Below are positions 6,463 through 26,064 of a stretch of 64,000 nt of DNA, one piece after another. The position numbers and the translations under genes were made by a program. This DNA is from Utricularia gibba (Eukaryota; Plantae; Magnoliophyta). The DNA is taken from contig NEEC01000002.1 of the NCBI GenBank assembly GCA_002189035.1, positions 6,262,001 through 6,326,000 of the forward strand. The letters run 5' to 3'. A model generated the notes under the pieces. That model worked only from the letters and a program-made list of their open reading frames with translations. It was not told where the DNA came from and searched no databases. Within the stretch, counting starts at the first letter, position 1; every line of letters starts with the position of its first letter.

Positions 6463-8002
6463 ATGGCGACAAGAAGGCCGGTAAATCCGTCGCGTCGGGT
6501 GGCGGATATTGAGAAGGCTCCGCTTTCTGAAACGCTTAGTTCAAGATCCGGACCTCCGTCGGCTTTTTCGGTGGCGCTCATTTTTCTGGTATCAATGTAC
6601 ACGCTTCTTAAGTTTTTCATCGATATTGTGTAGCATTTGCGGGGAAAAGTTGTCGCCTTTTGGCATCTGACGGCAGATTCTGTTTTCCATCTCTGCAGGG
6701 AGCCATTTTTGTTGTGGGTTATTTCCTTCGTAGTCAAGGTTATCTTTTCCCCCCTGCAATTGAATGTTGATTTCAACATGATGGACTTGCATTCTTTGTC
6801 GAAGATACTTGTGAACTTGTTGTCTGTATCTGCGTTCTTCGTGGTCACTCGTATTCATGTCATGTCTATGTGTCTAGTTAAAGTTACATTGTGTGGCCAT
6901 TTCCAGATATGATCTTTGATTCCTCTTTTGAGCAAGGATGCCTTCTCCTTTCAGGTGCTTTTGGAGTCAGTGAAGCTTTTAGTCAGGTAGAAGGTACTCG
7001 TGGTTTTCCAGTATTTTTTGCACAAAATATATGTTCTGTTAAAACTTGTCTAAAATTACTAGCCTCTGCTCTTCCAGGTGAATTCTTGTGTGCATCCGAT
7101 GTTGAACGTGGGATTCCAATTCTGAAGAAGGCGTATGGTGATAGCATGCGCAAGGTGTTGCATGTTGGCCCAAGTACTTGCTCTGTTGTTTCAAGAATGA
7201 TGAAAGAGGAAGACACTGAAGCATTTGGTATAGAACCTTATGATATAGAAGATGCAGATCCAACATGTAAGAGGCTTGTTCGCAGAGGCCTTGCTCGAGT
7301 GGTTGATATCAAGTTTCCACTTCCCTACCGGGCAAAATCGTTCCCCATTGTCATAATATCCGATGCTTTGGATTACTTGTCTCCAAAATATCTCAACAAG
7401 ACTCTTCCTGAATTAGCTAGAGTCTCTTCTGATGGCCTGATCATCTTCACTGGTAATGGAACTTATACCTTCTTTCTTGCTCTATGTATGTCTACAATAA
7501 CCCTCTTGTTTAATTTTCAACTAGAACGTCTCTTGTAGGTCATCCACGGCAACACAAGCAAAAACCTGCAGATAAAGCAAAAATCAGGAGTTCGGTAAGT
7601 CATCCTCTCTTATCCCTTCATGGGATGAAGCTCTTATATTTTGTCACTCAGATAAACTCCGCGTATCTTATCAGAACGAACATGTTATCAAAAATCTATC
7701 TATGAATCCCTACTGAGAGCATAATGCAGCCGTGTTTATTTTTCACTCTAGTGTTAGAAATGCATATTCCTAAGCCTTTTCTGCTCTACATGCTACTACT
7801 GTATAGTGAACTTGCACGATCCCAATAGTTTTCTCGTTATATGTTGTAGGTGAAGCTGAGGAGCGCGACGTGGTGGATTCGGTATTTTGTCCAAATGGGA
7901 TTAGAAGAAAATGAAGCTATAGTAAAGAAGTTTGAACAGGCTGCAGGTAAAAGCTATTACACACCAAAATGTCAGATGTTTCATCTCAAGCCATACCTGT
8001 GA
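6463..8002 (+). CDS. CGR2/CGR3: Cotton Golgi-related pectin (homogalacturonan) methyltransferase; 6 exons
   Basis: Exons 6463-6588, 6699-6738, 6955-6993, 7078-7452, 7539-7594, 7850-8002 splice into one open frame: MATRRPVNPSRRV..., ILKKAYGDSMRKVLHVGP, DIKFPLPYRAKSF, VSDALDYLSPKYLNKTLP-type motif, KLRSATWWIRYF...CQMFHLKPYL*. Confidence 0.92.
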
Positions 8003-14111: not shown

Positions 14112-15765
14112 CTAGCTCCGGGAATGAAGATCCTGAGGAGGGCAAAGATCCTTTCGCAGATTCTCCGAGAAAAGTTTGCAGGCCTCGACGCTTAGGTTCG
14201 CCGCCGCCGCCAGGGCGATGAAAACCGCCGCGTCCTCCGTGCAGTTAACATGCTGTGCGGCCACCTCCGCCCTCGGCCCCGTCTTCTTGCCGCGGATACC
14301 AACCATACCCCGACGTGTGCTTCCATTACAAATCCACGGTACTGGCAGTAAGGCCAGAGGGCGGAATCGAAGTCACCGCTGCCGCGTGGGCTGCAGCCGG
14401 GGGAAGCGGCGGCGCTTCGCGGCGTCCCGGCGGGTGTTCCGCCGCGGCTGTTGGTCAAATCGATGACGAATTTTCCTCCCTTGCTGCCAGTGAGGCACGA
14501 CTCGGCTAAGAGAACGCCGGTTGTGGAAGCCGAGTCGGGGATCAACTCAAATCGGTAGCCGAGGCCATCGGAGGCGCTTCGCGCCCGCCAGACTTCAAGG
14601 CGGCCCCAGGGCTTCCAAGTACCGTCGCCTGGGCGGAGAATGAGCCAGCAACCCGGGTTGGCCCGGCTGACCCGGTCCGTGCCGGGTGAGGCGACGAATG
14701 GAGTCACCATCGACGCGACGGCGACTGATGAACCAGAGAGGTCGTGGATGGTGATGGACCATCCCTTTCTTTCCTTTCCAGGCCTTTCCTTTTCGCTGCC
14801 AAACGACGATAGCCACCGCCTTCCACCGCCACCATGGCCCGCCGGTAGTGACCTGCATATAAATCACAAGGGACCATAAATGAGAACTCCACCGATCTGC
14901 ATTCACATGGTTAAATATGAAATCGCCATGAAACGCCCTCGTGAAAGTGAGGAAATGGGCCATCCTCCAACTCAGATGGGTGAATTTTTTTTCCGGGGAA
15001 TTCCCGGACGAAATCCCCGTTTTACAGTTCCGGTTTTCCTTCAAACTTCCATAAGAAATCATTGAGAAAACTAGTACCAGAATTCACGAAAATTTATTCT
15101 CTGAAAATCGCATGAATCAGAGCATTTGCTCACCGGGATCGTTGATTCGGGTCGGCGGAGCGAAAGCTGAACTTGCAGGTGAAAACAGGCTGCCGTGAAT
15201 TTCCGCCGATTTGGAAAATTTGAGGACTGCATTCAGGCTCGCCGTCGAACTCAAAAACGAACCGCGGCTCCGGCTCCGCCCTGACATTCAGATGAAACTC
15301 AGCTTTATTCATTTTACCCGCTTTCCCCATACTAATCCACCCATTGTGAATAACCACCGATCTCGATTCCGCAACCGTCAACTCCAAAGGTACATAAATT
15401 TTCCCCAGTAACCGACCGGAGTGCAGGCCGCAAGCACTCCCCCGACTACCGGAATACACCAATATCACAAGACGGGCCTTATTCGATCGCGAAAATACCG
15501 ACGATTTCCCTGTAAGCCGGTCCATATCCGATTTACTCAGATGGAAGCTCGCCGCCAGAGCTTGAGAATTCCCATCAGGGAATTGGGTGTTCTCCGGCGC
15601 AATGTAGGGCACTACCGCGTTCTGCAAGGGGAACCCCTTCAACTTAATTACACAGAAACACGGCGACGATGAAGGATGCACCGCCACGCGAGCCGGCTTC
15701 ACCGCCACCGGGATTTTCAGGCCGAGATTCTTCACCGTAACCCTTACAAAGGAACAAGGATCCAT
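14112..15765 (-). CDS. DUF1005 family protein; 2 exons; -1 frameshift at C4 run 14308-14311
   Basis: Exons 15765-15134 and 14852-14112. MDPCSFVRVTVKNLGLK, FVFEFDGEPECSPQIFQI, KERKGWSITIHDLSGS, MVTPFVASPGTDRVSRANPGCWLILRP, WKPWGRLE. The conserved tail QHVNCTEDAAVFIALAAA..LS..AC.LFS continues in the shifted frame. Confidence 0.9.
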
Positions 15766-18683
15766 AAATCACCCAACCAAACCCCACCAATCTCACTCTC
15801 AAAACCCGATGAACGCGGCCAAGATGAAGACGGAGACTGAAACTACACAACAGCCACCAACTTAACGGCCCTGCCCTCCTCTGCCCCGCCCTCCACCCCG
15901 TGGCCCGTACAGAAAATAATTAAAATATTAATTATGGCATAAAACCACGCTCTTTGCACCTGTTTATTATTATTAAATTATTAATCAATCGCTGGACGCT
16001 TTTAATTTCCCCATTATTTATTTTATCTTATAAAATCCCAAATATAATAAATAAAATATCTTTAATAAACACCTTCGATTCGTTGTATTTATTTATTTTA
16101 TTATAAAATCAATTTCCATTTTTTAGGGGAAAATGGGGGGGAGTTGGCGAATTAGGCACAGGCACAGCTGTTTACAGCCTGTCATGTATGTTCTGATAGG
16201 GTGGACGTTGACGCCAATTCCTACCTTGGAAAAGGACTAATCTGCCCTTCCGTTGACGATAATCACTTTTGCTTTAATGACGCTATAAAGCGCTTCTTGA
16301 TTCGGTTGCATTGCCCTTTCCTTGTGTGCTATAAATTCAATAATAGCGCACTTAAATTTTATTAATTAAAAACACTGCAAAATTGTTATTAAAAAGATAA
16401 ATCATTGTTTTGATAATTAAATAAAGATTAATTCCAAAAATAGATTTATATTCTATAATAATAATTTAATCTACCAAACTCTACAATATATAATTTAATG
16501 TATAAAACACTACAATATAATTATCATATACTACAAAGCATATAATAAAAAACACATTAGGTGGTAGTGTCATCTAGCACCAAGTGACACGTGGCAGTCA
16601 AATTATTATGATCTATTTATTTCATTTAAAAAAACAGTAAGCTTTTTTACTCATATTTTTAGTTTATTTAAAATAATATTTGATTTTAAATAAATCTTTA
16701 TTTTAATGTTTTTTCCTCCAAATGGGTCGTAGGACGGTTTAGGAGGACAAATACGGCCCAGGTCCATTGAATAAATTCCAGGCCCATACTTCTCAGCCCA
16801 CTACATATCCACCTCCTTTATCCCTAATTTCCAATTTAGGAAATAATTCCAGGCTAAAAGTTTATTATTTTTTTAATTTAAAGAATTTGTGTTTTTTTAA
16901 AAGCATTTTTTGAAAACTAATTCTAATAAATTTTAATTTTAATTTCTTTACACCTTATTAAAAATAAGTATTTTGAAATTTATGTTATAAAATATGATAA
17001 TTAAAATTAACTCTAAATATTTTTTAAAAAATAAAAACTTCTGTAGCTATAAACCATATGCTAGTGGCTAATGACACCATTGTTAGAAAGGTATATTTGA
17101 TGTCCTAATCAACTCCCACATTAGGAAACTCGGGTCGGGTCGGGTCAAGCCCACCCGAGTTTTATGGTGCGTGGGAGATGTTTGAAAGCGAGAAGAAGGC
17201 AAGTCATGGGAATAGGCAAACATCCTCTCAGGGAATATATGTGTGTGCTCTTCATTTGAGTACAAGTAATGGACGCATTCATTCAAGTTTGATGGTGAAG
17301 TGAGTGAACTTGGTGTATGAAGTGGACCTGGCACTGGTAATATGCAATCAGCTTGGCAATCACATTCACAGAGGAGTGTGCTAATCAGGAAGGAAGCCTT
17401 GATGGCAGAATGGTCCAGATGCTCACAGGAGGAGGAGGAGGACCACTCGCAAAGAGGGCCTTCCTTTTTTCTCATACTTTGCAAACACAGACCAGAGTAC
17501 AGGGATGGGCATTAAAGTTGTCTCTCCATTGTTGGGGAGAGAGGTCAGAGAGGACCACACTCTCCCTTGCTCTTGAGTCTGGGGGATGGTTTTCTTCCTG
17601 TGGATTCTGAAGGGTGTGGTGCAAAGTGTGGAGGAAGAAAGCTGCTATTGCTGGTAAAGAATGGGAAAATGAGGGGAGAAAGATGGATGGATCAAGTGTG
17701 TGGAAAAATGGAACTGAGTTAAGGAAAAACTAGCAGGCACCATCCATCATCATCTCCAAGAACTGGTAAAAGCTGTTTGTAGACCAGCTTTTGCTGCATT
17801 CAAGTGTCGAGCATTCAGATGGTAGTTTGGAAAATAGAGCAGAAGAGATTAGGCTTGATCTGGTTTGGATCCAAGCAGGGGATTTATGTTGTACAGGATG
17901 GTTTTGTACAAGCAAAAGGATCCATGGAGTTGCAGGGGAATTGACTAACTGGTCCTTGAAGTGAAGAAGAGCAGCGCAGAGGAAACATCATGGGAGGGGG
18001 GAAAAGCATGAGAAAATGACTGCACATGAACGTATGAGAACCATGAACTGAAGAAAAATGGAAATGAACTTCATCATTGCATACTGGAGTTGCTTTTCTT
18101 CTTGACTAAACTGTCATGTTTCAAACAAAAAAAATGTCTCTCTTAGGACATTTCAGAACGAGCCTCTTATTGAGTTCTAACAGATTCCTTTCAGGATAAA
18201 GGATCAAAAGCTATATGAAGAATCATCGCAATGTGGAAATGAAAGAGAAACAGATGCATCAGTAACAGCATGAGCAGTAAAATGGAGTGAGAGATTTAAA
18301 CTAAGAGAACATTCATGGCAAAAGATGTCAAGAGAGATGAGGAAAAGAGCATTAAGCCATTATCATTAACATAAAGAAGTCACGGTTTAGGTACAAGACC
18401 TGTTTCTTTTCTTCCAGCAAAAGATAAAGCCATGGCAAGTTGAGTTCCCCCGCACAGCATTCAAAAGCAAGGAAAAGAGGGAATCATGACACAACATGCT
18501 TTCTCTATTTGCCACGAACCAGTAGAAAATCATCAAACTACTGATCAAAACGTGAGAAAACAGCCAGTTCCATAAATCCAAGAATTCCCTGTCTTTCTCC
18601 CTTGTATTTCCTTTCTTTTTTTTTTTTTTGTTTTGGTGTTTTCCTGCATATAACAGTTAGTAGAAACGAAGATAAAAAAAAAA

Positions 18684-18707
18684 TGCCTGGCTCCATTCTG
18701 TGTGCCT
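18684..18707 (-). ncRNA. Putative endogenous target-mimic (eTM) site for miR160 within a probable lncRNA (host roughly 17.2-19.3 kb, ends undefined)
   Basis: Minus strand reads AGGCACACAGAATGGAGCCAGGCA. It pairs with miR160 (UGCCUGGCUCCCUGUAUGCCA) perfectly at positions 1-11, has a 3-nt bulge, then pairs at 12-20 except position 16; position 21 is also mismatched. No long ORF nearby. Confidence 0.6.
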
Positions 18708-20764
18708 CCAACAACCAGAAGACGAAAAGGTCCCCATCTCCCCCTTTTTTTTGTTATTCTGGTTCTCCACCGATTTCTAACAGCAACTAATGCATTGTCC
18801 TGAAAGCCCGGAAGAACCTGCAATTCCCAGAAGGAGAAGGAAGCAAAAATGCATCTTTCTTCGAGGAGAAAACTTGTAAATCGGTGAATGCAGCGACACA
18901 AGCCATCCCAAATGACCCGAGTTTCAGTTTCCTATTTTCTTCAGCGGCGCACATAAAAGCTCGGCACTTTCCCATTGAAAGAAGAAGAAAAACACAAAGC
19001 GGGGACTTGGGGTTTGCGAGAAGGGAATGGGTGTTTGTTAAAGAGGTAGAATATGTCAAGCTTGTATTGTGAGTGTGTCGGGATCTCTTGCAGAACCGGC
19101 AGCAGGAGCAGCAGACCGCAGGCAAACTAAAATATCGATTTTTATTGGGATTGCGAGGCGGAGAAGGCAGTAGGCCACTCAGCCTATCCCCCAACCCGCT
19201 TTTTGTTCCCTTCCCACACACACGCTGCTGAAAAGTCTCAAATAAAAAAAACACTCAAAATCTTCAAGTTCATGAAACACTCAACGCTCAAGCAACCTTA
19301 AAGCCATTCACTCTTCATTCTACGGCAGCCATGAAGCAGGTTCATTGTATTGGCTCAGCCCACACGAACGGAGCCATTTTATTCTTAAAAAACCTTTGCA
19401 TCTTCTCAGAGTAATAAAGGAAAAAGCCTATGCAGTTTCCTGCTTACCTCATTTACGACGAATTAGGACATGGGGTGGATCAACACACGCAACAAAAGTC
19501 CTATGCTGCTTCTGCATGTAATAAATGCGGGTGTAATAGCCAAGTATCAGGATGCACAGCCACGAAAAATACCATGATCCATTTACCCAATGGGCAGGGA
19601 GTAAAATGGCCAGGTCACAAGCAAAAAAAGAAAAAAAAAACCTTTCGTTGCATTCATTGGAAGCACCAGCCAATCAAAAACTATCCAGATTTCAGGAATG
19701 AACATTACCCGTGTGTTTATGTTAGGACCATATGGTCGTCGTCTCATGTAAAATAATTTCAGAAAGCAGTATAGAAGAAGGGTGCAAGTTATCTGGACAG
19801 GAATGTTGGATATGGGTGCTCACATTACATCAGACTCTGGAGTGGTGTCTCTCAGAACTCAGAAGCACCATTAAATGCTGATCAATCAAGGGAAGAGAAG
19901 CCCTGCAGCTCTGACATCTACTTACCCTCCTGCAACTGTTGTTTGTTCTTAAAAATCTTGGGTTCCTCCCTCACCGCAGCGACATGTAGGGCCGCACCTT
20001 GATTGTCTTCCCAGCTCATGGTTTCAAAACATGGAATCCCTACTCAAACTAAAAACTAGAACCATCTCGGTTCAGTAACCTCGCGACTGTTCCGTTTCTC
20101 GAAATACTTCACCTCCATGAAATTTCATGAGCTGAACGTGTGACTAATGGGGTGCATTGAATAGCTAAATGCATACGCAGGCACGAGAGGTGATCGGCCG
20201 CGTCTGGTGTGTGGCACCGAGTTCCACTGCAAGCATTTCGGAAAGTAAACCAGCTCCAATGGAGCTGCTTCCATGGCGGCTGCCGACTCAACTCCTCTCA
20301 AACTACCATTTCTTTCCATTCCCTCAAACATGCCCCACCTCCATCATTTGCTTTCCTTCTTTATCAAGGGCTGATCTGAATAAAAAATAAAATTATATAT
20401 AATAAAATATAAAAATATATATTAAAAATACATACATTTAATAGATTTGCTCTAAGTTTATTTGTATTTTTGAAGTATTCAATAATATTATTATAACTAT
20501 AGCGTAAATTAATAAACTATCTACTGTAAAATTATCTTTTTTGACAAAAAGGTACTATAGGATTCGGTGATGATGGAGTTTGTATGAGTTTGGAGTAAAA
20601 GAAATTAATGCTTATATATATTATTTAAAATTATAAATATTAATTAATAATTTAAAAATATTTTATATTACCAAAAATATTCTATTCTATACTCGACTCT
20701 TTCATATTGTAAAATCATTGATTATTGTAATATATTATAATCTTTCGATTTTAAGTGGGTGGAC

Positions 20765-20812
20765 GGCCCATAAGTTAGAAAGAAAAGCCCGTTAGGCCCA
20801 AAAGATGTGCCC
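20765..20812. promoter_or_regulatory. Cluster of site-II-like (TGGGCY/GGCCCA) motifs upstream of a GC-rich putative transcription start
   Basis: GGCCCA twice, plus AAGCCCG and TGCCCA, within 50 bp. Lies at the boundary between AT-rich DNA and a GC-rich 5' segment starting near 20820. Confidence 0.45.
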
Positions 20813-21349
20813 AACCAGCTTCGGATACGCCGCGCCGCCGCAGTGCGCAGTCTCCGGTAGGTTTTCGAATTCAGTGGGATCGCGGCCTGCTCGTAGCCGC
20901 ATGATCAGATGTATTTTCTGCATTATATTTCATGTCTTCGTCGTTTTCTCGTTTTACATCAATTATTCGGATTTGGAATAGTGAAGTTTGGAGATTGGTC
21001 TTGTCCGGGGCTGCGTTATTGATGCGCATTCTTTTTCTCCGTTGATGGAGAGTTTGATTGCTCTGCAATTGAGCATTCACTAAGTGTCATGTACTGAAGG
21101 TGAGGTAAAACGTTAGCTGAAAAATGCAGCATTGCTGATGAAATGATTCTCCCTCGGGCCTGAATGCTGATATATATTTCATGAATGTAGGATATTGCGC
21201 ATGAGGACTGGGATTGATGAGGATGACTGTGCCCCAAATATTGAATTCAACATTTCCAGATTAATGCTCCGCTTGACTAGGAGTTTCGTTACTGCTAATG
21301 GAGATATGGTCGTTTTGTGTGTATTTTCATATTTCTGTGCTTATGATGC

Positions 21350-21690
21350 AGCAAGGAATCATGTTAGGTTTTTTCATAATGGATCTTTTATAAAACTGAC
21401 TCAGTTCGTGCAATTGGTCTTTTTTCAGACGGCAGTTGGCACCTGCTGCTTGCCTCTGCATCTTATGTCTGGATCATATTTTTGGGATTTTTTTTATTTG
21501 TAAGGAAATATGGTTGTTCTATATTTTCATTTTGAGTATTTCTCTGCTTAGGATAGGACAGGGAATCTTCGTAAGTTTATTCATAAATGATTTTATGAAA
21601 TCTGGCTCAGTTCGTGCAACTGGTGGTTCTCAGATGGCGGTCATGGCACCTGTTTCTGGTTTCAGTACTCATTTTTCTTTTGGGATGTGG
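21350..21690. repeat. Diverged tandem duplication, ~130-bp core, ~205-bp period
   Basis: CTGACTCAGTTCGTGCAATTGG...CAGACGGCAGTTGGCACCTG (~21396-21445) versus CTGGCTCAGTTCGTGCAACTGG...CAGATGGCGGTCATGGCACCTG (~21602-21651). Flanks are also similar (GGAATC upstream, TTTGGGAT downstream). Confidence 0.8.
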
Positions 21691-24422
21691 GTCCTTTTGT
21701 TTAGGTTGTTTCGTGGGAAATTGATTGCGTGCGTACTAATTTCGTAAACGTCAATCTTTTTAGAACTCTGTAGGCAGTTATTCATATGCCTAAATCCAAG
21801 CACATCTTCCTTATGTAGTTATTATTAAGAATCTGGAAAACTTTCGTGTTGTTTAGATGTGTCGTTATTATCATTTTTGCCTTGGTGGCTTTTTATTTTA
21901 CTTGGAAATGTGTAGTACTTCGACTATAAAGTAACGAAATACATGAAGTAAATAGATTGAAACACAACGGAATAGAATGATGTATCAATATGTAGAGTTG
22001 CAATGATTTCGATAACTGCGTTAGCCTATTAATGTGGGCTTCAAGATGCCAGGATTTATGCCTAATGGAAAAGGGTGGTTGCCTTTGTTGATGCCGTGAA
22101 ATATAGCACATTTGACTCTGAATACGGGAATTAGTAGTTCCCTCTTCTAATACAATTTTTGCTTTGGTACGTGATGTATGAAATGTTAACGCACGTATAA
22201 ACAGAGAGTTACACGTATTGTTGTTTTCAGAAAGCATTAGTAGATTCTTATGCACAAAAGCTTAGCATCAATCTCACTTTCATGCATCTTATCTTGGAAT
22301 AAGTTCTCAGTGCTTAGAAAAATTGCATGCATTAATGAAAAGTTAGAATTCTCAGTTCCACCTTTACTATGCTATAGATGTAGTTTGTGCAAATGCTTCC
22401 TTAATGTTCCTAGAACACACAGTGATTTTTTGAAACGGGTTTTGTTCCTTTTTGCCATCTGCAACTCTGTAAAATTTGTGTATGGAGAAACAACTGGAGG
22501 AGCATGAATGCATTTTCAAAAGTTGCGCATCACCTGAGTGATTGCTACTGTTGAAGATTTTCTTCTGTCACTATATAAAACGGAAGCGTTTATTCATCTT
22601 GCGCATGGAATCGCATGTGCACCGAACCTGCTACGTGATTCTATTCCTAATGCCTATTGTCACCCCCGTATCTTACTATTAGGATATGTAGAAAGTGGAC
22701 TTAGTGACCTATGGGGGTTGTTAGCATTTAATTCCCCTTTAGATTCTCCATTTTCTCTGCAGGAAAAGGAAAAAATGTCTGGTTCCCTTCAGGGGCATCT
22801 TGTAGATTTCTGACAACAACATGTGATCTTTCATGGAGGTAAGTTAATTCTTATCTTCTTTTATGATATGTTTGAAGGAATCGGAATCAAATTGATTTTG
22901 TACTTTTGCCCTCTCAGATCAATGGCTCTTAGGAAAGAATAAAATAAATGAATGTGCAAAATCAGAGGTTGGTGTTGGGGGATGATTGTAAATTTGGACT
23001 GTTGCACTTACATGAAAATACGGATGCAGAGAGAGTGGCACAGGGTGTGGGATAAGGCCCCCACTTTTAAGAGACGCTACACTGCCGTGCCATGGTGTCT
23101 GAAAAAGGATGCGTATATAGTTTACCTTTTTTTTTGCTCATTGAGAGATCAACTGGTACGTATGGTGAGTTACTACACTTTCCAACTTGTTTCCTTTCTC
23201 CCAGTCTGCCGGCTCTTCGCACACCCATCCGTCTTATCTATCTTCTGTCGATCCCTCCATTAACCTCTGTGGTCCCTTAGTTTTCTTTTTCCTACATTGT
23301 GCATGCATGATTTCTTCTTCTTTTTACTAATTTGCTGTTCTTTGTTTTTCTTATCGTAGGCCGAGGCTCCCCATCACGTTGGTCTGTTCGTGTGGGGCGA
23401 ATTCAGGGGGGCCACCTTCTAATGGGATTCCCTGCCCATGGACCGATTCCAACCACTGCTCGTTGTGATGAAAGGGTTGGCAATGTGGGATGTTTGGTAT
23501 CTTGCAATTTAATCATTCACTCACAAACTTCCTTCATATCTCCCCTCCCATTCATCACTGCCAGTTTTACAGTAGCCTAATGTGGAACAGAGTGCTGGTG
23601 TTTTTTTCTTGCCATTGCAATGCAGTTTTGGTGGGAATTCATATTGGATTCAGACCTGCACACTGGTGTCTCGGAATGCAGGTGAGGTTGTCCAAATTCA
23701 CAGAGCCATGGCGTGGTCGGGTTCTTAAAATCTCTTCCAGAGAGCAGAATTCGCAGCACTGTGCATGTCATAGGGGGCCTCAAGAGAATTCATGAACAAC
23801 CCAACATTTTTTTCCCTTACCCCATAACTTCCATTCTGCACATACATACACCGATGCAGACACCGTTGTTTGTTTTCATTGTTGAATTTGGTTTCAATTT
23901 TGAAATCTAGCATTGAATTTTAATTATAATGTTTTTAAGCCTCTGCGCTCTCTTGTTGGCTCTTTTGTTGACAGTGGATTCCCAATGGTATTTGTGTGCT
24001 GATTGAAGTATGTAACCCCACCAACCCACCAAAGGCCATACTCGTTTGACTTCAACTTTTTGCCCATGGCGGGTGAAAAAAACACATGCCAATTCCACTA
24101 ATTATCTCTGCACAAATCCAGGTACGTGATGATTAGCCACTAATCTCCTCTCTAATCATCTCCATTTCCTTTGTCTTGTCCTTTTAAAATAACTTTCAGA
24201 CAAGTAAACTCCGGTTGTACTTTACAATGCTACAAAAGTTGCCACGTATTGTCTTAGTACCGTATCCTCATTTGTATATAAGCCCCCCTTCGCCCCTCAC
24301 CGATATTTGCCTTTCCACCATTAGCTCTCATCTCCCAGAAGTTGATGTGTGTTTGTTTCTCAAGATTCTGCCTCTTCTTCTGAGAGTATATCGAAGTTGA
24401 GAAACAAGAAGCATTTGAAACC

Positions 24423-26064
24423 ATGTGTAACCAGAAGCCTGCTTCTCCATCCTCCTTTCTTCCCCGGATACCACTAAAAAAACCCTTCTCCCCGACTCTG
24501 ACAAGGCCATGGTTGTTCATGAAGATGATGATCTGCGTAGATGGCCAACTTTTGCAGAGGTTGCATACAAATCTAATCTTGGAAACACCCATAACTTGAA
24601 ACTCATGTTTGTCTAATCTCTCTGTTGTTGTTGCTGGTTCAGGCCATTGAAGAGAGTAAGGAGATCGGGAAAGTATCAGGGCCTACTGCAATCACAGGGC
24701 TGATACTGTATTCCAGAGCAATGATTTCTATGCTTTTTCTTGGTTATCTCGGCGAGCTTGAGCTCGCCGGCGGTTCCCTCGCCATCGGAGTTGCTAATAT
24801 CACCGGCTATTCGGTTATATCCGGCCTGGCCATGGGCATGGAACCCATCTGCGGCCAAGCTTATGGCGCCAAACAAATGAAGCTTCTTGGGCTTACTCTG
24901 CAACGAACCATTCTCCTCCTCCTCACGTCGTCGATTCCCATCTCCTTCATGTGGCTGAACATGAAAAGGATCCTGTTATGGGGTAAACAAGATGAAGAAA
25001 TCTCATCAGTGGCGCAGACCTTTGTGCTGTTCGCTATCCCGGACCTTTTTGTTCTCTCTTTTCTCCATCCCCTGAGAATCTACCTCAGAACTCAGGGAAT
25101 CACGTTGCCGCTGGCTTACTTATCTTCAGTTTCGGTTCTCCTTCACGTCCCCTTGAATTTCCTTCTGGTCAGGTATCTGAAAATGGGGATTGGAGGAGTA
25201 GCCATGGCAATGGCGTTGACAAATCTCAATCTTGTACTGCTCCTCTGTTCGTACATATACTTCTCCGGCGTGTACCGGGCATCCTGGGTGGCTCCCAGCG
25301 CAGATTGCCTCCGTGGCTGGGCGGCGCTGCTGTCTCTAGCCGTACCCACTTGCATTTCCGTTTGTCTGGAGTGGTGGTGGTATGAGCTCATGATAATGCT
25401 CTGTGGACTGCTGGCGAATCCCAAAGCAACGATTGCTTCGATGGGGATTCTGATTCAGACGACATCGTTGGTCTACGTTTTCCCGTCGTCTCTCAGTTTG
25501 GGGGTGTCGACGAGAGTGAGCAATGAGCTGGGGGCGCGGCGGCCGGCGAAAGCCCGCATTTCGATGATCGTCGCGATGGTGTGGGCGGCGGCGCTGGGTT
25601 TCGGCGCGATGGCTTTAACGACTCTGATGCGACATCGATGGGGGAGATTCTTCACCGGGGACCCCCAGATTTTGAAACTCACCGCCGCCGCGTTACCGAT
25701 CGTGGGCCTCTGCGAAATCGGAAACTGCCCACAAACCACTGGCTGCGGCGTTCTCAGGGGAAGCGCGCGGCCCACCATCGGCGCCAACATCAATCTGGGA
25801 TCTTTCTACTTTGTCGGAATGCCGGTAGCGCTGCTGATGGGCTTCGTGATGAAACTGGGGTTTCCCGGTTTGTGGTTGGGGCTGTTAGCAGCGCAAGGCG
25901 CCTGCGCGGCGCTCATGCTGTATTCTCTCTACAAAACTGATTGGGTGGCGCAGGTGGAGCGTGCGAAACAGCTCACCGGAACGGCGGCCACCGCCGGGCA
26001 ACTCCGATCAGGTCATGATATTGAGACAGGAGACGGCGAAGCAGACCCGTTAGTTAAAACCTAA
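24423..26064 (+). CDS. DTX48: MATE (DETOXIFICATION) transporter, DTX48/ZRZ/ABS4-like; 2 exons; -1 frameshift at C4 run 24462-24465
   Basis: Exon 24423-24559 (MCNQKPASPSSFL...DDLRRWPTFAE, needs +1 base), 83-nt intron, exon 24643-26064 with ELELAGGSL, GMEPICGQAYGAKQ, CLEWWWYE, GNCPQTTGCGVLRG, NLGSFYFVGMPV. Confidence 0.93.

Follow-up and report, generated by a model that had tools for sequence, protein, structure and literature searches.

A candidate miR160 target-mimic site in a single-copy, non-coding block between a DUF1005 gene and a MATE efflux gene

Within a contiguous stretch of 64,000 nucleotides of genomic DNA, hereafter the window, we found 24 bases on the minus strand that are complementary to miR160 and are interrupted by a bulge of three target nucleotides beside the slicing position. 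Our tentative reading is that this site (18684-18707) is a real but lineage-specific and weakly expressed miR160 target mimic of the eTM160 class, a reading to which we give a probability of roughly 0.45. A non-coding RNA, expressed weakly or in particular tissues from the minus strand of a block at about 17.1-20.4 kb, would carry the site. miR160-loaded AGO1 would bind this RNA through a perfect 5' helix of 11 bp and a 3' helix of nine positions (eight pairs and one mismatch), and the 3-nt bulge would hinder cleavage. The RNA would then sequester miR160, and the repression of ARF10/16/17 would be relieved. If real, the site would be one more natural miR160 decoy, and its bulge, a natural one displaced by one position from the 10/11 register of the classic examples, would be relevant to the rules by which mimics are predicted. 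Should it be a chance match, it would illustrate that rule-based mimic prediction yields convincing-looking sites without function.

Results

Pairing of the site with miR160

The site and the two tracts that follow it on the same strand are:
18684-18707, minus strand: candidate target mimic, complementary to miR160 around a 3-nt AAU bulge (sequence, rule scan and ViennaRNA duplexfold).
18674-18683, minus strand: U10 tract directly 3' of the site (read from the sequence).
18616-18629, minus strand: A14 run, 55 nt to the 3' side of the site (read from the sequence).

Read on the minus strand from 18707 to 18684, the 24-base miR160-complementary stretch is AGGCACACAGAATGGAGCCAGGCA. With UGCCUGGCUCCCUGUAUGCCA as the miR160 query, positions 1-11 of the miRNA are all Watson-Crick paired, the 3-nt AAU bulge of the target follows, and positions 12-20 are then paired except for a mismatch at position 16. 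Position 21 is also unpaired, so that the rule scan counts two mismatches (16 and 21) and zero G:U pairs for the whole site; its best register places the 3-nt bulge after miRNA position 11. ViennaRNA duplexfold agrees with the rule scan: a helix of 11 bp is followed by the 3-nt bulge in the target and then by two helices of 4 bp separated by a 1x1 mismatch. The query matches longan pri-miR160 primers at positions 1-19, on both strands (PMC4633511).

The duplex between the site and miR160 has an energy of -34.5 kcal/mol, 76% of the -45.4 kcal/mol of a perfect complement (ViennaRNA duplexfold). Among the 21,324 overlapping 30-mers of the window it is the strongest miR160 duplex, ahead of the runner-up by about 6 kcal/mol (runner-up -29.0, mean -8.8, s.d. 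4.4). The 11-mer core, GGAGCCAGGCA, occurs once in the window, and 0.02 copies are expected from shuffles. If a minus-strand RNA bears the site, it should be bound strongly by miR160-AGO1. Weak pairing of the A14 run with the U10 tract is conceivable; alternatively, the run could be poly(A)-like or a tract of internal priming.

The published eTM rules ask for perfect pairing at positions 2-8, a bulge of exactly 3 nt at positions 9-12 and no more than three other mismatches or G:U pairs (PMC4274897). In the rule scan of the whole window, 18684-18707 was the sole site that satisfied them. A further eTM criterion is that the surroundings are non-coding and that neighbouring genes are over 200 nt away; the site lies 2.9 kb from the ATG of the DUF1005 gene and 5.9 kb from the ORF of the MATE gene, the two genes that flank it.

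An earlier, first-pass annotation of this DNA had described the pairing (positions 1-11 perfect, AAU bulge, mismatches at 16 and 21), had claimed agreement with the eTM rules and had invoked the principle of IPS1 and miR399. The rule scan and duplexfold reproduce the pairing, and each of the published sequence rules holds, with two mismatches of which one is terminal. The likeness to IPS1 is borne out in part: the central 3-nt target bulge is there, but its register is 11/12, and the stricter 10/11 register does not apply. [quoted passage not shown] Here it lies between positions 11 and 12, and both nucleotides that flank the scissile bond are paired. Because the bulge is thus displaced from the register of IPS1 and of the tested decoys, resistance to slicing can only be predicted for this site.

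Chance expectation and look-alike sites

Chance frequencies were calculated from the base composition of the window, for perfect positions 2-8 with a single 3-nt bulge, allowed in four registers, and were scaled to a genome of ~100 Mb (1593 windows of 64 kb). For miR160, sites with at most two mismatches are expected at 3e-5 per window and 0.05 per 100 Mb, and those with at most three mismatches at 0.0004 per window and 0.64 per 100 Mb. The exact pattern observed (positions 1-11 perfect, at most two mismatches in 12-21) is expected at 0.006 per 100 Mb. With only ~0.05 such sites expected in a genome of ~100 Mb, the site is improbable as a chance match when miR160 alone is considered.

The most serious alternative is nevertheless that the site is a non-functional chance match in the 8.8-kb gap between its flanking genes, that the gap is the decaying remains of a once larger interval and that any RNA from it is noise. 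We consider this a substantial possibility. It holds that the site is one of the few good bulged sites that a 100-Mb genome contains across ~25 conserved miRNA families. By rough extrapolation, a search across ~25 families, most of them less G+C-rich, would give ~1-4 chance sites of such quality per 100 Mb. Many predicted mimic sites are chance matches, and in soybean 144 of the 10,410 mimic sites predicted for conserved miRNAs were expressed, which leaves most of the rule-based predictions unexpressed (PMC4274897). The RNA fold surrounding our site also fits a chance origin, as its stability is not above that of shuffles (z = +0.87). What argues against chance is the low expectation for miR160 itself, about 0.05 for sites this good and 0.006 for the exact pattern, and the membership of miR160 among the families with established natural mimics.

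Public metagenome contigs were scanned with the 22-nt pattern GCAYACAGNNNNGAGCCAGGCA. The scan returned 52 stretches, many of which fall into a small number of repeated families whose contigs have 50-76% G+C. Two look-alike contigs that were checked carry animal-type domains (POPDC in L044 and RH1 in L046), and for another, L042, the nearest look-alikes are arthropod proteins. One unrelated contig of 59% G+C carries GCACACAGAATGGAGCCAGGCA (L043:50-71), a 22-mer identical to that of the window, and such matches therefore arise without miR160. A relative, L021, has ACT where this 22-mer has AAT. That sites as good as the present one turn up in contigs bearing animal-type domains, in a contig of 59% G+C and in one that is probably from an arthropod speaks for chance. 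On plant homologues of the site the metagenome scan is uninformative.

The block that carries the site and its flanking genes

The features around the site are:
About 17080-20376, minus strand: single-copy block, presumed non-coding transcription unit carrying the site (composition and homology searches).
18787-18975, minus strand: 62-codon ATG ORF (MGKCRAF...) preceded by a CT-rich leader (no family match, absent from the protein collection).
14127-15780, minus strand: flanking DUF1005 gene, on the same strand as the site, with its ATG 2.9 kb downstream of it (homology).
24625-26064, plus strand: flanking MATE efflux gene of the DTX48 type (homology).

The block at 17080-20376 (3.3 kb) has a G+C content of 39-50%, and the spacers on either side of it have 20-27%. 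It has no second copy in the window and contains no meaningful direct or inverted repeats. Its 20 stop-free segments, taken from both strands, had zero Pfam matches even at E up to 1, and a search of the block against Rfam, also at E up to 1, gave nothing but one spurious match of 17.7 bits. By exact look-up, none of nine ATG ORFs of the block is present in the protein collection, and comparison with eleven related loci gave no match at the nucleotide or the protein level. Since Pfam, Rfam and homologue matches are all absent and its ORFs are missing from the protein collection, the block looks non-coding. A single-copy, domain-free and repeat-free setting of this kind is typical of intergenic decoy lncRNAs.

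Upstream of the decoy site, at a distance of about 80-270 nt, lies the 62-codon ORF with its 5'UTR-like leader. Nothing supports it as a gene; at most, it may be a small reading frame within the putative transcript. An origin of the site from a transposon or repeat was rejected, as the block has no meaningful repeats and no further copy in the window.

Transcription of the block

RNA evidence for the block comes from counts of sampled sequence words in RNA-labelled runs of the same organism, and such counts give neither the strand nor the position of the RNA. One run (X1) contained 13% of the words sampled from 18300-19300 and 4% of those sampled from 17050-20400. As 13% of the shorter region equals 4% of the longer one, the RNA of this run probably amounts to one piece of ~150 nt within 18300-19300. 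A second run from another study (X15) held 5% of the sampled words of 17050-20400 and is not a listed holder for 18300-19300. Six other listed runs held next to zero words of the block. The words in X1 and X15 indicate that some RNA derives from the block, and the minimal amount of it speaks for a chance match.

Across about 17.6-19.7 kb, A exceeds T on the plus strand, i.e. T exceeds A on the minus strand, and both flanking genes have more T than A on their sense strands. This asymmetry weakly favours transcription of the block from the minus strand. The orientation of the site agrees with it, which counts against a chance match. Known eTM160 RNAs are short, with 464-718 nt in rice, Brassica rapa and cotton, and those of rice and Brassica rapa are anther- or inflorescence-specific (PMC9975556). 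Because of this shortness and tissue specificity, thin RNA coverage is not strong evidence against a decoy.

History of the interval and conservation in Lamiales

The first-pass annotation had named DUF1005 and DTX48-like MATE genes as the neighbours of the site, and homology confirms both. The closest relatives of the MATE ORF are DETOXIFICATION 48 proteins of Lamiales, with Sesamum first (87%), followed by Paulownia, Erythranthe, Buddleja and Genlisea. A Lamiales origin of the DNA is thereby confirmed. The two genes are divergent and 8.8 kb apart (gap 15766-24624). Their orthologues in Paulownia (CM033115.1) are likewise divergent, but the distance between them is about 173 kb, with 16 locus tags; for Vitis, Castanea, Cinchona and Taraxacum, locus tags point to 11-17 genes between the two orthologues. 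Given 8.8 kb here against about 173 kb in Paulownia, the interval has collapsed in the genome under study. This looks like a collapse with loss of the intervening genes, as expected for a very compact genome, and a shrunken interval of this kind fits a chance match in decaying sequence.

Erg28 and EPF, which lie downstream of DUF1005, are syntenic. The only conserved parts at the compared loci are the MATE promoter blocks (22220-23285) and these genes downstream of DUF1005. In Genlisea, a 201-aa gene directly upstream of MATE (L011:1374-2110) matches 7077-7999 of the window, where the EPF-Erg28-DUF1005 block and an orphan gap separate it from MATE. Because this match lies beyond the DUF1005 block here, a further rearrangement has taken place relative to Genlisea.

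The comparison covered 10 kb either side of each orthologue, measured against an interval of about 173 kb in Paulownia. On the MATE side the loci came from Sesamum indicum (two assemblies), Paulownia, Erythranthe nasuta and Buddleja, and on the DUF1005 side from Paulownia, Sesamum angolense, Erythranthe guttata and Andrographis. Two contigs of Genlisea aurea that bear the two genes were added, with their complete upstream intergenic regions included. The 11-mer core is absent from all 11 loci of these six Lamiales lineages (10 kb flanks and the two Genlisea contigs), and the same 11 loci contain no miR160-complementary site with a bulge of 0-5 nt and up to 4-6 mismatches. The syntenic counterpart that the first-pass annotation had suggested looking for was therefore not found: there is no miR160-like bulged site within 10 kb of either orthologue in the six lineages. 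The flanks of the site also have no homology in the compared Lamiales loci.

Both absences, of the site near the orthologues and of homology in its flanks, favour a chance match. The absence near the orthologues is moderate evidence against an old, conserved mimic, but it does not count against a young one. Among mimics, the site alone is conserved across species and the flanks are not (PMC4274897). Since conservation is confined to the site in this way, homology to the known eTM160s cannot be tested through the flanks.

Comparison with known decoys

The known eTM160 lncRNAs comprise eTM160-1 and -2 of Arabidopsis, a rice RNA of 688 nt, eTM160-1 and -2 of Brassica rapa (530 and 464 nt) and a cotton lncRNA of 718 nt. 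A target mimic at 18684-18707 would resemble them in acting on the same miRNA, in having a bulged, presumably uncuttable site and in its non-coding, intergenic setting. By analogy, its expected outcome would be a decrease in miR160 activity and an increase in ARF10/16/17. It differs from them in that it is known from genomic sequence, and in that no conservation was found in the compared Lamiales loci. Decoys of miR160 are already known as a class, to which the candidate would plausibly add a member.

With IPS1/At4 and miR399, the founding target mimic, the site shares near-perfect pairing around a central 3-nt target bulge. The carrier of IPS1/At4 is a non-coding RNA, as is presumed here. The bulge follows position 11, however, whereas that of IPS1 is at the scissile bond (10/11). 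Among artificial decoys (MIM, STTM and the bulge series of Ivashuta et al. 2011), central insertions of 1-4 nt inactivate a miRNA best, and such decoys are effective in many RNA contexts, UTRs included (PMC3121747). Unlike the present site, they had the insertion between positions 10 and 11 and were driven by strong promoters.

The canonical miR160 sites of ARF10/16/17 have the same 21-nt complementarity and an in-frame reading like that of the site. They are bulge-free, are sliced and lie in ARF coding sequence, whereas the present site carries an insertion of 3 nt in surroundings devoid of ARF homology.

A relic of an ARF or MIR160 gene

It is very unlikely that the site is a relic by descent, either a decayed fragment of an ARF10/16/17 paralogue whose miR160 site took up 3 nt in frame, or a dead MIR160 arm. 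The idea draws on the in-frame reading of the site as G-T-Q-N-G-A-R-H, which we take to resemble the G-I/L-Q-G-A-R-H encoded at ARF10/16 target sites. As a dead arm, the plus strand would read TGCCTGGCTCC-ATT-CTGTGTGCCT, which is miR160-like with a 3-nt insertion. The similarity to the ARF motif stops at the edges of the site, however, and with E values up to 1 allowed, none of the stop-free segments of the block gives a signal for B3, Auxin_resp or AUX_IAA. An ARF relic is unlikely because there is no ARF domain signal around the site.

The fold of the plus strand at the site is not a miRNA-like hairpin (z = -0.55). There is no second miR160-like arm in the window and no Rfam match to MIR160 in the block at E up to 1; Rfam includes the mir-160 family. 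As hairpin, Rfam match and second arm are all absent, the site is not a MIR160 gene, and a MIR160 gene or pseudogene on the plus strand was rejected on these grounds, the missing star arm and the 3-nt insertion included. Nor does the window contain a MIR160 gene elsewhere.

A possible splice-acceptor arrangement next to the site

Two further motifs lie 3' of the site and its U10 tract:
18656-18662, minus strand: TACTAAC, branch-point-like (motif only).
18644-18648, minus strand: TGCAG, possible 3' splice site with AG at 18645-18644 (motif only).

The T10 tract (18683-18674), TACTAAC (18662-18656) and TGCAG (AG at 18645-18644) are all present where the first-pass annotation had placed them. The elaboration built on them is that an intron ending at AG 18645-18644 has the decoy at its 3' end, in which case intron-retaining isoforms only would carry the decoy. 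If true, the decoy would sit within the last 40 nt of the intron, and retention, not transcription alone, would decide whether miR160 is sequestered. This would be a splicing-gated target mimic that links RNA processing with auxin signalling.

As a proposal made from motifs, a splice acceptor with a retention switch is highly improbable. It has in its favour that the U10 tract, TACTAAC and TGCAG|G follow directly after the site, and that strong donor-like sites occur upstream on the same strand, GAG|GTAAGC (GT at 19447-19446) and AGG|GTAAGT (GT at 19925-19924). Yet the spacing from branch point to AG is short, at about 13 nt, and splice-like motifs of this sort are common in the U-rich intergenic DNA of plants. 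Moreover, an equally good pyrimidine-rich acceptor-like site upstream, TTGCTTCCTTCTCCTTCTGGGAATTGCAG|G (AG at 18819-18818), would place the decoy in an exon. We see little prospect, therefore, that only intron-retaining isoforms would carry the site; a target mimic transcribed from the minus strand of the block is the reading that we prefer.

Other observations

Several minor observations were made in the metagenome contigs and in the window. Two contigs of ~1 kb from different samples, 98% identical to each other and non-coding-looking, carry GCATACAGAACCGAGCCAGGCA at L026:791-812 (Ga0182167_1085577) and L038:283-304 (Ga0182182_1014696). Against miR160, this sequence forms a site that has two mismatches and whose 3-nt bulge follows position 10, and the two contigs could be plant eTM160 transcripts.

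The reading frame of the DUF1005 gene shifts near its 3' end (14294-14312, minus strand). The single DUF1005 ORF of the orthologues is matched by 14860-14312 and, 17 nt further on and in a different frame, by 14294-14127. This is either a real frameshift in a decaying gene or a one-base assembly error.

Finally, 20900-21800 of the window, ~3 kb upstream of the MATE ORF, has a strong excess of T over A on the plus strand (AT skew -0.23 to -0.29). It could stem from a plus-strand transcript that is not annotated, or from an upstream exon of the MATE gene.
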